From Podarcis bocagei (Eukaryota): 64,000 bases of DNA. The stretch is from assembly GCA_964188305.1 (NCBI GenBank), contig OZ076890.1; one strand, given 5' to 3'. Both the position numbers and the translations under genes were made by a program. Under the pieces are notes generated by a model. The model had not been told where the DNA came from, did not search any database, and saw nothing but the letters and a program-made list of their open reading frames with translations. Below are positions 3,376 to 50,727 of the stretch, one piece after another. Within the stretch, counting starts at the first letter, position 1. The number at the start of each line of letters is the position of its first letter.

Positions 3376-5053
3376 TGCAAGGCCATTTCTCAGGCTAGAT
3401 TTGAAAGATGCTTGCTTTTTTTTAGGAGTCATACTGTTGCCTAAACAGGCATGAAACTGGGAGCTCCAAGATTGCAAGGGGTGAGGTCCCCTCCCAACAA
3501 CCCACACACCTAACATTTATTGGGGTGTTTTCCTTTCAATTGCAGGTTACAAATTAGCCCCTCTCTTGTATTAACTGATTGTCAAGAGTGGGGCTGCCCT
3601 GCTTGCCCTTGCCCTGAACGCCCACTTGGTAGTGTGAACATCAGATCCAAGGAAGGATATGGGTGAACCACCACATGGCCCCATGTTGTAGTACCCACAT
3701 GAAGTATCCTTCACGTGATGAAGGCATGAAGGGGGTTATTGTAACACAAACATATATGCTTAAAATGGGGTTGAAATGCAGAAGGACATACTGTAAAAGG
3801 CATCTGCAGACATTAGATTATTATGCTCTCAAATATTATCCCCATAGTACTCATGCAATTATTTTCCTGATCTCCAAAACATCCACTAATTACTAATACA
3901 GTATATTCAGCATTCAAAACAAAGTTATGGTGGAATTCAACATCATGCTCTTCCAGTTGTTTCATTGGTGCAAGCATTTCAGTCTCTGCATTTCTGAACA
4001 CAGCAATAGTTTCACAGACTTGATAGCTATTGTAGTCAACAATAAAATGGAACTGTGGTGTCACAATGGTAGATGAGGCCATGATAGTACTAGTAAGGGG
4101 GGCTCTTATTTAGCCCTTGCACTATTCTACGGAAAGCTGCTTAACCCTTTCCCTCCATACTCCTTATTCACTCAAAATCATCCACCCAGCTGCTTTTCTT
4201 CCATTAGGGAAAAACTATAGGAAACACATAATGTTCCTCTCCTTCCATAAATGAAAAAGCGGCTGAGGAGGGAGGGAAAATCTGAGGAAATGAGTAGCAG
4301 GAAAGGAAACAGGTCAGCAGCTCACCACCACTGCCCCTCCCCTGCATTCAGTTGCAACAAAGCACTGAAGGAAACTGCATAAGATGTAAAAGCATCACAT
4401 GACCTCCGACCATGCTCTGAACCCCTCCCTCTTCTCATCATTAGAATGCGAGCTGGAGTCAGATGAGCAAAAGGGAAAGGGATGAATAAAAATTACCAGG
4501 ACTGCCAGATCTTGTATCTGAACACACGTGTTGCATAATAAACAGGAGGAAAACCCATTTTCAAAGGTTATCTGAAAGCATGTTAAATAGTTGACTATTC
4601 AGCGAAGCGAAAAATAGATCCAGCGGATGAAATAATAAAACTCCTGGGACAACAGATCCACACACTATTTAGCAGAGAATGAGGTTCTGTATAAAAGGCA
4701 ACAGAAGCAACATTTCCTATGGTACTTATGGAAAATGATGGCATGCAAGCAAAGACTAGTGAAACATTAAACTATTCAGCAACAGCTGTTTAGAGCTTTT
4801 TCTTAGAAGATGCACACAGCTGCATTTCAGGGTGGTAATGCATCTTTATTTTATTTCTTTCCTGAAGCTGTTTCCCATGCAGGATTTCAGAGGAAAATAT
4901 TATGCTCTCTTGAAAAATATATTAAAGCTGCATGGAGAGCAGTTGTTTTGTTAAAAATGTGCACTCCAATGTAATGAAACCTTACACTGATTTTTGTTCA
5001 AATGCACTTTACAGGTTTAGCAATACACCAGCACTCAATATTCAAAATGAATC

Positions 5054-5056
<3 letters not shown>

Positions 5057-5098
<42 letters not shown>
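5057..5098. repeat. (GT)n microsatellite
   Basis: Seen directly. Confidence 0.95.
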
Positions 5099-5099
<1 letters not shown>

Positions 5100-6217
5100 C
5101 AGATAAACTGCTTAGAATGGTAATTTATTATAGACTCGTACATGGTAAATCTACAAGTTTCGCCGCCTTTCCATCAACAAAGAGGGATATTTAATTTAAT
5201 CCTTCATCCACTCCTTGTCTGAAATAAGCAGATAGTAAGTCTTCTTCTCCTACAGTTATGCACTTAAAATAATGCCACTGTCAAGTGCCACCCCAGCAAG
5301 CCAGAAAATTACATGCTGCCACACTCTTCATGTAGCTTTTGACATGCTAATATTTTTATTTCATTTTATGACCATATAACAGACTTTTTGCCCTCCTATA
5401 AAAACATTGTTTGACAAGAACTAAAAATAAAATAAAAATCCTAGGAAATATATTACATAAAGGGGGGTTCGTGAATAAATAATCCAGCAATATGGGGAAA
5501 GTAGACATTTCTACTTGTGACTATATCGCTCTAAAAATTTGGAAAGTGTACAAAAAGCTATAAAGGACTGAATGAGCCCAGGGATATTTTTACATCATGT
5601 GCCCGTCAAAGGGGTGGGAAGTTGAAACTTGTAACTGAACAATGTCCCCCCCCCCAAATTATACAATATTTTCCTGAATTATAGCAGAGGTGGGCAACTT
5701 CCATATACTTTGAGACTATTTTAGGCTCCAGACAGTGGCCGAGAGACTGGCAGTGTATTTTACTGCAGAACCTGACCTGCTCCCAATAGCTTAGACAAAT
5801 GTTGTTTTTAAAAGGCTTCCTTACATATCTTTGTTTGCTTTCTGCAAATTGCTGCAGCACTGCTTGCAAAGTGTGCAGGGTCATACCACTGTATCTGTAG
5901 ATACATGGAGGGAGCAGATGCCTTAGCCAGCAGCAGCCTTTTGCTCCAAGGTTAACATCTCTCCTAATTTATCAAGTGAACTGAAATGCCTTGAATTCCA
6001 TTACAGACAAGTTCACACTGGAGTCTGTGAACCAGACCCCACATGTACAGAAGCCTCTGGCTAGCTGTAATAGCTATGGATTCTAGAGTTGCTGCTGGCA
6101 CCTGGGGAGTATTCCTGCTCAATCCCTCTGCTTCCACCACTCTCCATCTCCGTAGTGACTGCCTTCTTTGGGCAGCAGAGAGGAAGGATGAGGAGATTTT
6201 TGATGACAGGATTTTGT

Positions 6218-8900: not shown

Positions 8901-9814
8901 TCATCTAAGAGATGTATTTTGCGTTCTATTTCTATTGGTAGTCCAGTGTGGATGAACCAGTCATTCAAACTTCAAACAGAGAGCTGTAAATAGAATAGAA
9001 ATAGAAACAGAAATACTTTATTGTCACTGTACCACTTGTTTACAGTGAGATTAAACAAGCCCCCCTCCCCCCAATCTCTCAGTCCTTGTTACACTCTGTG
9101 TGCTGTCGTACGACCACCAACCCCAAACATCAGCTGCAATGTTGCTATCTTCCATTCAGCACCCTCATGACCCACGGGTAGAAACTGTTCTTTAACCTGT
9201 TGGTCCGGCTTATCATGCTTCTATATCTCCTGCCCAAGGGCAGGATATTAAAAAGGTGCTGCCAGGGTGTGAGTCATCCCTGAGAATGTTCCTCGCTCTT
9301 CTGAGGCAATGGTCTCCTGTGATGACATCTAGCGGACTCAGGGGACAGCCCATGATATCGTGTGCTGTCTTTTTTTTATATATATATAAAATTTTTATTA
9401 GGATTTTCTCATTTTTTAAGACAAACACACAAAAACATAAACATCAACCTTACACACAAATAACACATATAATTTCAAAATCTTATTTTCTTAACCACTT
9501 TCCCGGACTTCCACCACCTCCCCTTCTTGCATCCCCATTCAGAATTTAGCCCAGCAAGTTCTTTGTACCCAAATTAATCCCTTATAAATATTTTACTTAA
9601 ATTTTCTTAATTAACCATTTTCAAACTTCTATACCTCATTTTAATACCCACAGCAACCCCTTTTTCTAAGATCGATCCACATTCCCTTTCACGGAATTCC
9701 CAATTATTAAAATATTTACAAAAAATCTTAACAAATAAGAGCATATACTTGTAACCCTTTGGATTCTAAGGTTCTTCCCCCCCTCCCCCGGTTTTGATCC
9801 CTAAAAAATTGTTC

Positions 9815-10417
9815 TCAGCCTGGATCTATCACATCCGAGGCCTTTAAATCTCTTTCAGTCCCTTTCAGCCGGTTTTGTTGACTGTCCTTTATGTTGAATA
9901 TCCAATCTCGGAGCATCTTTGACCCAAAAGGGTCCAAATTTTTTCCAACCAGTCCTCCATATTCAAAGGAAGAGTCCAGATCCTGCTTCTTGTTCTTTCC
10001 AAGTCCAAATATCCCAAATGTCTCAAACGTTCCAATTTTCACCTTAGCCAAATTTGTAATCCATAAGTCTTCCGGACTCCCCATGGGGAAAAATCCCCAC
10101 TCTTCACTCTCAATTTCAAACCAAATTTTTGAGATCCGAACTTTATCTTCCGTATGTCCTGACCTTAGAGGCCTCTTGTTGTCCTTTTTCACTTGCATCA
10201 TTTCTGCTCCTTCTCCACATTCCTCCAAAACAGCACATATATCTTGCTTCCCAGCTGTAGATTCTTCTTGAGTCAAATCCACCACCTCAGCAGAGTTGTT
10301 TATTTTAAAATTCAAGATTGTCAGATTCGTAGCCATAACAAAACTCTGCTCTTGCAGCTTTCCCAGAAGTTCAAAGACCCTATCCAACTCTGCTTGTAAT
10401 TTTCCATCTGCAGCCAT
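9815..10417 (-). CDS. 200-aa ORF of the retro-insert; heptad-like N-terminus, ends DVIDPG*
   Basis: ATG in strong Kozak context (acaATGg) and 603 nt uninterrupted. LQAELDRVFELLGKLQEQ..LTILNFKINNS looks coiled-coil-like. Confidence 0.6.
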   Translation of the reverse strand: MAADGKLQAELDRVFELLGKLQEQSFVMATNLTILNFKINNSAEVVDLTQEESTAGKQDICAVLEECGEGAEMMQVKKDNKRPLRSGHTEDKVRISKIWFEIESEEWGFFPMGSPEDLWITNLAKVKIGTFETFGIFGLGKNKKQDLDSSFEYGGLVGKNLDPFGSKMLRDWIFNIKDSQQNRLKGTERDLKASDVIDPG

Positions 10418-11166
10418 TGTAATGTCCCAAATCCCCTCTAGAGGGATTTTGGTTACTAAGTGTTCTTTTTCCAACAATCCGGATATTTTGTTATTATTGC
10501 CACTCTAATTTTAAAAGCTTACAGTCCAATGTAACAAAAATAACCGGCACAAATAACAAAAAACAGAATTTCTTGACTTTGACAGCTCAGTTGACAGCTG
10601 TCAAACTCTGTAAATATCTTCACAGGCTCCCTCACGGGTCGCTCCCGGATCCGGGGGGGGGGTTACTCTTCAACTCTAAAGATCAATTCAAATCCTCCAG
10701 CGATAAACTTATAAGTCCAAATCGTGAAATTAAGAATTTTATCTCAAAAAGAGAAAGACAGTCTCTCGATCTTAGTTGTTTAATTCTTGCTTTAGATTGC
10801 CTGCAAGGGGAGGGGAGGCGGACTTCCTTTTGACACCTCCCCCCGTCGTACCGAATTCAATTAAAAGAATTTTTAATTCGAAATTCCGTATTACTCACGG
10901 GTTGTTGCATTTTGAGTCCAAATGTTCAAGGAAAAAAGTCAGCGCTATCCAGCCATGGCTTGCTGCTTCACTCCGTGGAAGAAGCGGTCTACTCACAGCA
11001 CCATGCCACTCCCCGCACCCTCTCCAAAGCCTTTAAAAAGGCTTCTTTGTGGGTCGGGGGGGTGCAAATGGTGCCCGCCGAGTCACCAAGTCCACAGGCA
11101 TCCGCGCCTGTGGTTTCTAAGGGTCCCCGCGTCGCCGCCGCGGCAGGACCCCTCCTCCACTGAGCC

Positions 11167-11226
11167 GATTCCCTCCGGAGCTCGGAGGGAATCCGCCATT
11201 AGCTGGTCGCACCAACCCGGAAGTCC
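11167..11226 (-). promoter_or_regulatory. L1-type internal promoter signature at the 5' end of the insert
   Basis: Minus strand reads GGACTTCCGG (ETS-like, 11217-11226), then AATGGCGG (YY1-like, 11193-11200), overlapping a perfect 11-bp hairpin at 11167-11193. Confidence 0.55.
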
Positions 11227-11377
11227 TAACTGTAGCGATATCGTGTGCTGTCTTCACCACCCTCTGTAGGGACTTTCTGTCCATGGCTGTCAAACCAGCG
11301 TACCACATCATAATACAGTATGAAAGAACACTTTCGATTGTGGACCAATAGAAGGAAATCATCAATTGCTGTCTAAC

Positions 11378-11534
11378 CAGTGGTGTAGCGTGGGGGGTGC
11401 AGGGGGGGCCGGCTGCACCGGCCGCAACATCGGGGGGGGGCACGAAGAAGAGACTCGAGTGCTAAAATCCACGGGTTAGGGGGCGCAAATTACTTGCCTT
11501 GCCCCGGGTGCTGACAACCCACGCTACGCCACTG
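11378..11534. mobile_element. hAT MITE (157 bp) nested in the Rex1 LINE
   Basis: TIRs cagtggtgtagcgtggg / cccacgctacgccactg and 8-bp TSD tgtctaac. Confidence 0.92.
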
Positions 11535-11947
11535 TGTCTAACATTGTTCTTTCACAAGACCCTAAGGAAATGAAGTCTCTGTTGGGCCTTCCTAACCACC
11601 TGGGCTATATTGACCTTCTACGTAAGGTCTTCACTAAGATGGACTCCCAGGAATTTAAAGAAAGAGACTCTCTCCACACAGCCCCCCGATATACAACGGG
11701 GCTAGCTCCCCTCTCTTCTTCTGAAAGTCCAACACCATCTCCTTTGTCTTGCCAATGTTTAGGTGCAGATTGTTCTCTGAGCTCCATGTGGATACCTTTT
11801 GAACCTCCCCCCATACGCAGATTCGTCTCTGCCTGTAATTAAACCCATTATGTTCGTGTCATCAGCAAACTTAATAATTGCAGTAGAAGGGTCAGATGAA
11901 ATGCAATCATATGTATACAGCAAATACAGGTACTTCAGTGAGATGTC

Positions 11948-18775: not shown

Positions 18776-19709
18776 AACTGATGGGTTCAAAATTGGGAAA
18801 GGAGTTCGACAAGGCTGTATATTCTCTCCCTGCTTATTTAACTTACATGCAGAATTCATCATGCAAAAGGCTGGACTGGATGAATCCCAAGCCGGAATTA
18901 AGATTGCCGGAAGAAATATCAACAACCTCAGATATGCAGATGACACAACTTTGATGGCAGAAAGTGAGGCAGAATTAAAGAACCCCTTAATGAGGGTGAA
19001 AGAGGAGAGTGCAAAATATGGTCTGAAGCTCAACATCAAAAAAACGAAGATCATGGCCACTGGTCCCATCTCCTCCCAGCAAATAGAAGGGGAAGAAATG
19101 GAGGCAGTTAGAGATTTTACTTTCTTGGGCTCCATGATCACTGCAGATGGTGACAGCAGTCACGAAATTAAAAGATGCCTGCTTCTTGGGAGAATAGTGA
19201 TGACAAACCTAGACAGCATCTTAAAAAGCAGAGACATCACCTTGCTGACAAAGGTCCGTATAGTTAAAGCTATGGTTTTCCCAGTAGTGATGTATGGAAG
19301 TGAGAGCTGGACCATAAAGAAGGCTGATCGCCGAAGAATGGATGCTTTTGAATTCTGGTGCTAGAGGAGACTCTTGAGAGGCCCATGGACTGCAAGAAGA
19401 TCAAACGTATCCATTCTTAAGGAAATCAGCCCTGAGTGCTCAATGACAGATGCTGATGCTGAGGCTCCAATACTTGGGTCACCTCATGAGAAGAGAAGAC
19501 TCCCTGGGAAAGACCCTGATGTTGGGAAAGATGAAGGGCACAAGGAGAAGAGGATGACAGAGGACGAGATGGTTGGATAATGTTCTCAAAGCTACTAACA
19601 TGAGCTTGACCAAACTGCGGGAGGCAGTGGAAGACAGAAGTGCCTGGCATGTTCTGGTCCATGGGGTCACAAAGAGTCGGACACGACTAAACGACTAAAC
19701 AACAACAAC
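18776..19709 (+). mobile_element. Bov-B (RTE) LINE, 5'-truncated
   Basis: GIKIAGRNINNLRYADDTTLMAESE RT motif, premature TAG at 19362 and (caa)n tail after gagtcggacacgact. Confidence 0.96.
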
Positions 19710-21986: not shown

Positions 21987-22372
21987 TTGTTGTTGTTGTT
22001 TAGTTGTTTAGTCGTGTCCGACTCTTCATGACCCCATGGACCAGAGCATGCCAGGCACTTCTGTCTTCCACTGCCTATCACAGTTTGGTCAAACTCATGC
22101 TGGTAGCTTCGAGAACACTGTCCAACCATCTCGCCTCTGTCGTCCCCTTCTCCTTGTGCCCTCCATCTTTCCCAACATCAGGGTCTTTTCCAGGGAGTCT
22201 TCTCTTCTCATGAGGTGGCCAAAGTATTGGAGTCTCAGCTTCAGGATCTGTCCTTCCAGTGAGCACTCAGGGCTGATTTCCTTCAGAATGGATAGGTTTG
22301 ATCTTCTTGCAGTCCATGGGACTCTCAAGAGTCTCCTCCAGCACCATAATTCAAAAGCATCAATTCTTCAGC
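21987..22372 (-). mobile_element. Bov-B LINE 3' fragment
   Basis: RVPWTARRSNLSILKEISPECSLEGQILKLRLQYFGHLMRR, (caa)n tail and probable TSD ttaagt(c/t)taactt. Confidence 0.95.
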
Positions 22373-50545: not shown

Positions 50546-50727
50546 NNNNNNNNNNNNNNNNNNNNNNNNNNNNNNNNNNNNNNNNNNNNNNNNNNNNNNN
50601 NNNNNNNNNNNNNNNNNNNNNNNNNNNNNNNNNNNNNNNNNNNNNNNNNNNNNNNNNNNNNNNNNNNNNNNNNNNNNNNNNNNNNNNNNNNNNNNNNNNN
50701 NNNNNNNNNNNNNNNNNNNNNNNNNNN
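50546..50727. other. Assembly gap (182 N)
   Basis: Run of N. Confidence 1.

Follow-up and report, generated by a model that had tools for sequence, protein, structure and literature searches.

A candidate protein-coding passenger of L1-type retrotransposition in lacertid lizards

The 64,000-nt stretch of Podarcis bocagei DNA analysed here (contig OZ076890.1 of assembly GCA_964188305.1; called the window in the following) carries a 1865-bp insert at 9372-11236, which reads on the minus strand and encodes a protein of 200 aa. A sequence-only reading of the window had described this insert as a complete poly(A) retroelement with a single open reading frame (ORF) and as a candidate passenger of L1, the long interspersed nuclear element (LINE) whose enzymes would have moved it. 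In the following we describe the insert, its copies in other genomes and the RNA and protein that it encodes.

The insert and its target site

Both ends of the insert are marked by the 18-mer GATATCGTGTGCTGTCTT, of which the window holds exactly two copies (9354-9371 and 11237-11254), against a chance expectation of 0 in shuffled sequences. On the minus strand, where it reads AAGACAGCACACGATATC, the copy at 11237-11254 lies 5' of the element and the copy at 9354-9371 lies 3' of it, so that the proposed target-site duplications (TSDs) are indeed a perfect 18-bp direct repeat around an insert ending at 9372 and 11236. The T-rich junction TCTT/CA that had been suggested as nick site can be read directly from the plus strand as ...TGTCTT/CACC.

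The flanks of the insert, also read on the minus strand, come from one LINE. Its upstream half (11255-11923) is a decayed ORF2 with the frame ...FYWSTIESVLSYCIMMWYAGLTAMDRKSLQRVV and a FADD box at 11759-11923, and its downstream half (9213-9353) continues the C-terminal frame of ORF2 with MGCPLSPLDVITGDHCLRRARNILRDDSHPG.... Put together, both flanks form one reading frame (...LQRVVKTAHDI / (KTAHDI)MGCPLSPL...) in which KTAHDI is duplicated, and therefore the insert splits a decayed LINE ORF; frame continuity and the FADD-type box upstream agree here with the insertion into a LINE reading frame that had been claimed. A clade name for this host LINE, previously given as Rex1, found no match in Pfam (four pieces) or in the homology search, for both of which short pieces were queried apart. 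An empty-site paralogue of the split LINE was found neither in the window nor in the retrieved loci bearing other copies, and no further copy of the insert was found within the 64-kb window.

Read from its 5' end, the element begins with 12 nucleotides (GCTACAGTTAGG, 11225-11236, minus strand as for all following features of the insert) that are absent from all of the Podarcis lilfordi copies described below. Among the copies belonging to the lineage of the window copy none other extends to the 5' end, and the extra nucleotides possibly stem from a 5' transduction, the source copy having been transcribed from further upstream, or reflect a start that is specific to the lineage. They are followed by a conserved, GC- and CpG-rich domain of 288 nt (10937-11224) beginning with ACTTCCGG, a putative internal promoter and structured RNA head, in which ACTTCCGG itself (11224-11217) can be read as an ETS-like motif and AATGGCGG (11200-11193) as a YY1-like motif, and in which a hairpin with 14-bp arms spans 11196-11164. 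The first 300 nt of the element have a GC content of 0.62 and an observed/expected CpG ratio of 0.74, and the GC/CpG-rich 5' end with ETS-like and YY1-like motifs thus stood up to inspection. The remainder of the leader (10418-10936) is AT-richer and less conserved. Only five ATGs, each opening a short ORF, precede the start codon in the leader of 819 nt, and the strong context of this codon, ATTACAATGGC, is the same to the letter in the window copy and in P. lilfordi.

The ORF (10417-9815) encodes 200 aa plus a stop codon and comprises a helix at residues 3-42, a variable and probably disordered middle and a conserved basic C-terminal tail ending in DPG. It is followed by the 3' untranslated region (UTR; 9400-9814), whose final ~175 nt can be aligned with other lineages at 70-73%, by the polyadenylation signal AATAAA (9399-9394) and by an A/T-rich end (9372-9393) made up of AATTTT, a (TA) run and six A, or eight if the first two bases of the TSD are counted. 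As read on the minus strand the element ends with CCTAATAAAAATTTTATATATATATAAAAAA. The total length of the 3' UTR is 443 nt, and the leader of about 820 nt, the intact 200-aa ORF and the 3' UTR of about 440 nt in the earlier description are correct. Regarding the claimed AATAAA and poly(A) tail, the signal is present as described, but the tail of just six A (eight with the AA of the TSD) is shorter than claimed.

A dispersed family of retroposons

In order to name the relatives of the window copy (WIN) we use L001-L015 for DNA contigs and loci and P0001 and so on for proteins. P. lilfordi contains three full-length copies, which are 98% identical to each other, have their own TSDs and all start exactly at ACTTCCGG. 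They are located at 4930-6722 of L008 (TSD of 13 bp, AACTGTTTCTATC / AACTATTTCTATC), at 2183-3982 of L011 (about 20 bp, TATAAAAGAACTGAAAAGAG) and at 2096-3903 of L012 (~9 bp, TAAAGCTTG). A fourth copy in L007 is 3'-truncated, and at least eight annotated entries of the family are distributed over at least six chromosomes of this species. Further copies are present in contigs of about 15 sequencing runs (Logan), and their flanks differ beyond tails of A5-A18: a third lineage (L009, L010 and L013) shows A15-A18 tails and three different flanks, and L003 and L005 show A5-A7 tails and yet other flanks. The contig DNA is collinear with the insert across leader, ORF and 3' UTR and has no introns. 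All contigs spanning the region downstream of the ORF pass straight into the 3' UTR, which is carried by L003, L005, L009, L010 and L013, all five with the AATAAA at the same place as in the window copy, as well as by the collinear L001/L002. Over the family the TSDs measure 8-20 bp. As other copies have their own TSDs, A tails and an identical 5' start, they represent a retroposon family and not a single processed pseudogene, and further copies with distinct TSDs, for which the earlier reading had proposed to look, were found both in P. lilfordi and among many sequencing runs. That full-length copies share one exact start furthermore implies that the promoter is internal or that the start site is at least fixed. 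The family is present in lacertid lizards at least.

Older copies, which are ~70% identical, are found in the same P. lilfordi loci (from 3500-4242 onward in L007 and at 1348-2057 in L008), and the old L007 copy matches the other of two protein clades (P0017). One genome holds at least two deep lineages with ~30% identity of the protein and ~70% identity of the DNA. This is of importance for the idea that the copies are processed pseudogenes of a fast-evolving host gene, whose ordinary mRNA would have been copied repeatedly by L1. AATAAA, an A tail and TSDs are indeed typical of retrocopies made by L1, the 5' end resembles a housekeeping CpG-island start site, and a short mRNA would be expected to give full-length copies. 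However, two lineages of such divergence lie within the same P. lilfordi loci, young copies of 98% identity are located on several chromosomes, none of the contigs has an intron, and the purifying selection described below acts between lineages that are each known from retrocopies. Neither do the named entries, which are all 'hypothetical predicted protein' of P. lilfordi, include any named gene product. A processed pseudogene would show neutral decay from a single intron-containing parent, whereas here two deep lineages with ratios of nonsynonymous to synonymous substitution (dN/dS) of 0.25-0.71 were found, and we regard this origin as very improbable.

The scars of the copies are those of an L1-type retroposon: the TSDs measure 18, 13, ~20 and ~9 bp, the tails range from A5 to A18, and nick sites are T-rich. 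These features show that the copies were inserted by target-primed reverse transcription. Among the copies the TSDs start with AAGA.., AACT.. or AAAG.., and often the A tail is followed by AAGA(C/A), as at 9371 of the window, at ~985 of L003, ~1055 of L005 and ~1367 of L010 and at the 3' junction of L013; the corresponding nick of the bottom strand would be TCTT/. A fixed target motif was considered, since AAGACA follows the A tails of three copies (window, L003 and L005), but was dropped, as the sites in P. lilfordi are AACTGTT, TATAAAAG and TAAAGC. Since the P. lilfordi copies differ, AAGA(C/A) is a bias and not a fixed site, and what remains is an L1-like preference for TSDs that open with an A-rich run, often AAGA.

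In two unrelated P. lilfordi loci an old copy is followed by a young copy just downstream (3500-5100 and 5149-6521 in L007, where the two nearly abut, and 1348-2057 and 4930-6722 in L008). This pairing could reflect a high density of copies, nesting or a local insertion preference. The copy in L012, which has an intact ORF of 194 aa, sits within about 150 bp of a called ABC-transporter gene of 1358 aa (L012 1-1946, minus strand), and the annotated 167-aa product P0021 of the same locus begins 27 codons past the conserved ATG of the family.

A conserved RNA head and an orphan protein under selection

Conservation within the element is highest over its first ~290 nt. The window copy and distant copies are 82-94% identical over the initial 250 nt, compared with about 50-70% in most of the remaining element and 22-24% in the central part of the ORF. 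Starting from ACTTCCGG, 288 nt are predicted to fold into a closed multi-helix structure with a minimum free energy of -154.4 kcal/mol (z = -6.3), and none of 200 dinucleotide shuffles was as stable. In an RNAalifold analysis of seven rows 17 of 92 pairs are maintained through two-sided changes. Some of these belong to a long-range helix of 12 bp, in which three or four positions are compensated when the window copy is compared with P. lilfordi. In order to control for circularity the window copy was folded alone and its pairs were counted in three other lineages, with the partner slid by 1-3 columns as control. In the other lineages 80% of the cells pair, compared with 38-48% after sliding, and 13 pairs show a double change, compared with 2-6 in the slid controls. 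As this evidence is based on only four independent sequences, the compensatory conservation of the fold is suggestive and not a proof. The 5' domain may act as a promoter, as a folded RNA or in both ways.

Within this domain an upstream ORF of exactly 38 codons begins at the ATG inside the YY1-like motif (11200-11084 of the window, minus strand; 2208-2324 of L011). It has equal length in the window copy and the young P. lilfordi copies, and in two old P. lilfordi copies it meets a stop after five codons, for which reason we rejected it as a coding gene; conservation of the RNA has probably produced it as a by-product. Four contigs from four runs (L009, L013, L014 and L015) all begin with CGGGTGCCTTAAGCGCC and thus share a break ~150 nt from the 5' end of the element, and all Logan contigs of this one lineage end ~150 nt short of the element start. 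The common break point suggests that other repeat families, perhaps an L1, have the first ~150 nt in common with the element.

A search with the 200-aa protein returned six full-length relatives of 84-34% identity and a profile search returned fifteen, all of them 129-214 aa long, and a search without length limit of 1.84 billion cluster representatives returned eleven proteins of at most 215 aa. In total about 20 homologues of 130-215 aa are known to us from these searches. As every relative has at most 215 aa, there is no fusion to a reverse transcriptase (RT) and no longer relative among them. The only named database matches are 'Hypothetical predicted protein [Podarcis lilfordi]', and no named gene product from any annotated genome is among the relatives. 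When 20 members are aligned, both termini prove to be conserved, the N terminus as MAA.GKL.AEI.R.F.LVG.LQEQ and the C terminus as ...KDYQQNR.RGTERDLRASDVRNPG. Between them lies an indel-rich middle that cannot be aligned between lineages and divides the family into the two clades, the window protein clustering with P0001, P0002 and P0016-P0018.

Pairwise dN/dS values calculated after Nei and Gojobori for nine sequences lie between 0.25 and 0.71. Independent pairs show a significant excess of synonymous changes, with values of 0.25 for L004/L005 (p=1.4e-7), 0.42 for L009/L011 (p=1.7e-4), 0.36 for L006/L011 (p=2.9e-4) and 0.42 for WIN/L002 (p=4.2e-4). By this check, which the earlier reading had proposed, the ORF is not neutral over copies. 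By segment, dN/dS is 0.11-0.3 for residues 1-45 and 166-200 in the closer pairs and 0.4-0.8 for the middle, and the ORF is still open at 176-215 aa in sequences that have already reached a dS of 0.7-1.0. The ORF is thus under purifying selection, which is strongest in the N-terminal helix and the basic C-terminal tail.

Selection on the ORF bears on the alternative of an RNA-only parasite, for which the 5' domain and the poly(A) end would suffice and whose ORF would be dispensable and open only through youth and the search method. In agreement with this, the 5' domain is conserved far more than the ORF, the middle of the ORF is unalignable across lineages and has no fold in the structure model described next, and one P. 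lilfordi copy is frameshifted. Nevertheless, several independent pairs have a dN/dS significantly below 1, the low values given above being those of both terminal segments, the frame stays open in spite of the dS just mentioned, and the strong start context is kept to the letter, making a dispensable ORF improbable.

An AlphaFold2 model built from the 20-row alignment has a mean predicted local distance difference test (pLDDT) of only 48.7. Solely the helix at 3-42 is confident, with 75-92 in blocks of ten residues, and residues 44-181 fall below 50, as do 143 of the 200 residues overall; a folded RNA recognition motif (RRM) is not seen. When residues 1-60 were modelled in three copies, the helices formed a parallel, in-register bundle, whose contacts at 3/4, 7, 10/11, 14, 17/18, 21 and onward follow a heptad pattern. 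Its interface score (ipSAE) was 0.45, whereas the best of three controls reached 0.10. The mark for this score was passed by 21 of 30 solved one-chain pairs and by none of 23 single chains (17 of 29 and none of 30 for eukaryotes), and the trimer runs, with a contact agreement of at least 58% and a partner pLDDT of at least 67, differ from this calibration by the use of three copies. The model supports, but does not demonstrate, a self-association of the N-terminal helix as parallel coiled coil, and the number of strands in it was imposed. The protein is thus predicted to consist of a coiled coil joined by a disordered linker to a basic tail, without the core of RRM and C-terminal domain (CTD) of L1 ORF1p.

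The window protein has no Pfam match at E<=10 and hence no RT or endonuclease (EN) domain, as had been stated before. Likewise, Transposase_22 or the RRM or CTD of L1 ORF1p was not found in any of 20 members at E<=1, where only scattered single Pfam matches occurred, and a profile search of PDB sequences at E<=10 gave coiled-coil noise only (neuroguidin, SB1 and spike S2', E 0.45-1.5). A feature search of the ESM Atlas, with a best score of 0.80 at low recognition, provided no lead. Pfam, the PDB profile search and the AlphaFold2 model therefore all agree with the earlier remark that the ORF lacks an L1 ORF1p signature.

These searches have to be weighed against a further explanation, namely that the family is a true HAL1, a deletion derivative of a lizard L1 that kept 5' UTR, ORF1 and 3' UTR and whose ORF1 shrank and diverged until only the coiled coil could still be recognized. 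Its layout, a 5' UTR with a putative promoter, a first ORF, a 3' UTR and poly(A), is that of an L1 minus ORF2, L1 ORF1p also has an N-terminal coiled coil, and the break that four Logan contigs share ~150 nt into the element would be in line with a 5' module common to other repeat families. On the other side, none of the 20 members matches Transposase_22 or the ORF1p RRM or CTD even at these permissive thresholds, the PDB profile search, which was expected to include solved L1 ORF1p structures, gave only noise, the 1.84 billion representatives tie the family to no longer ORF1p, and the fold model has no RRM. We consider a true HAL1 rather unlikely.

A possible route of mobilization and comparison with other passengers

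Taking all this together, the insert is most likely a complete representative of a dispersed retroposon family, whose members are ~1.8 kb long, non-autonomous and polyadenylated and are moved in trans by an L1-type enzyme. In our model RNA polymerase II would start at ACTTCCGG, driven by the putative internal CpG-rich promoter with its ETS-like and YY1-like motifs, and each new copy would take this promoter along. At its 5' end the RNA would fold over ~290 nt into the closed multi-helix domain, and the ATG in strong context, 819 nt downstream, would give the 200-aa protein, whose N-terminal helix would oligomerize as parallel coiled coil and whose conserved basic tail probably binds the RNA of the element itself or a partner protein. 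The polyadenylated ribonucleoprotein would then take the ORF2 protein of an L1-type LINE in trans, which would nick T-rich sites such as TCTT/ and perform target-primed reverse transcription.

Several points weigh against this view. We infer the L1 partner only from TSD length, A tails and T-rich nick sites, and the pure A tail of the window copy has only 6-8 nt after a (TA) run. Protein searches return open frames only and are biased to intact ORFs, and of the four P. lilfordi copies one is frameshifted and one 3'-truncated. Conservation is poor in the middle of the protein, where indels occur and no fold is predicted with confidence, the role of the protein is a guess, and the RNA structure relies on the four independent sequences mentioned above. 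Finally, that the family is undescribed rests on protein databases and on the literature searched, in which no lizard HAL1, half-L1 or ORF1-only element was found; Dfam or Repbase may already list it as a curated or automatic entry.

HAL1 ('half-L1') of mammals is a non-autonomous L1 derivative encoding only ORF1p (PMC5753468). The lizard element resembles HAL1 in having one ORF between a long 5' UTR and a 3' UTR, no ORF2, a poly(A) end, L1-type TSDs, multiple copies and a presumed trans-mobilization by L1 ORF2p. The two differ in their hosts, mammals and a lizard, and in the ORF, which in HAL1 is plainly L1 ORF1p, whereas the lizard ORF has no ORF1p domain according to Pfam, PDB profile and fold model. 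Both thus have a single ORF without EN or RT, but homology to ORF1p was not found for the lizard protein, for which a coiled coil alone is not diagnostic.

L1 ORF1p itself is longer than 200 aa and consists of a coiled-coil trimer, an RRM and a CTD, and it acts as RNA chaperone. Similar to it, the protein described here has an N-terminal parallel coiled coil (in our model) followed by a basic region, and it is encoded by the first ORF after a leader of ~0.8 kb with a YY1-like site near its start; in contrast, it has about 200 aa and neither RRM nor CTD nor sequence similarity. HeT-A of the Drosophila telomeres is a non-LTR (long terminal repeat) retrotransposon of ~6 kb with a single gag-like ORF and no RT, which targets chromosome ends and whose Gag carries zinc knuckles. 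It is comparable in keeping only its own first protein under selection and obtaining reverse transcriptase from another element, whereas the lizard element is dispersed, has 1.8 kb and encodes a coiled coil and disordered protein, in contrast to the ~6 kb, the telomeric location and the zinc knuckles of HeT-A. By analogy, the family may be called a 'half-LINE' in the logic of HAL1 and HeT-A, but with an orphan protein and not a recognizable L1 ORF1p.

Passengers of the SVA type or of the short interspersed nuclear element (SINE) type share with our element, as do processed pseudogenes, the use of L1 machinery in trans, A tails and TSDs. They differ from it as the lizard element encodes a selected protein, has neither a tRNA, 7SL or 5S head nor a variable-number tandem repeat (VNTR), and possesses its own conserved 5' domain and several long-lived lineages. 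A search of both strands of the insert for Rfam families at E<=1 gave no match, and neither a tRNA nor a VNTR-like array was found in the insert. Instead of the RNA polymerase III head and missing coding capacity of a SINE, it thus shows a selected ORF and no tRNA.

L1 proteins strongly prefer the RNA that encoded them, and passengers therefore need a way round. Alu uses SRP9/14 at the ribosome, and HAL1 has retained ORF1p. Unlike Alu or HAL1, the element described here would be a passenger that keeps an unrelated small protein, predicted to be oligomeric, together with a covarying RNA domain. It is conceivable, though we put it forward tentatively and would not call it probable, that the family is an independent protein-coding parasite of L1 and not a shrunken L1, with a structured RNA head of ~290 nt and a coiled-coil/disordered protein of de novo or unrecognized source, both selected through several co-existing lizard lineages. 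If this were true, the family would represent a third solution, beside SINEs and HAL1, to the capture of ORF2p in trans. Lizards are reported to maintain many L1 lineages side by side, and the family appears young enough for activity, judging from the 98% identical P. lilfordi copies, intact ORFs and unspoiled CpG-rich 5' end. It offers a direct test system for the part of a passenger protein in trans-mobilization, for ligands of the 5' RNA fold and for the tracking of L1 lineages by a parasite. In addition, the copies annotated as 'hypothetical predicted protein' in P. lilfordi should be repeat-masked.

Besides the split LINE, other pieces of retroelements are present in the window. A reverse transcriptase fragment of the BovB/RTE type at 18861-19364 (plus strand; RVT_1, E 6.8e-10, motif RYADDTTL) is the only RT found in the window, and elements of this type leave different insertion scars. 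Runs of N occupy 2576-2795 and 50546-50727, and an ORF at 22095-22328 on the minus strand (...RRGRQRRDGW...) resembles the tail of a LINE.

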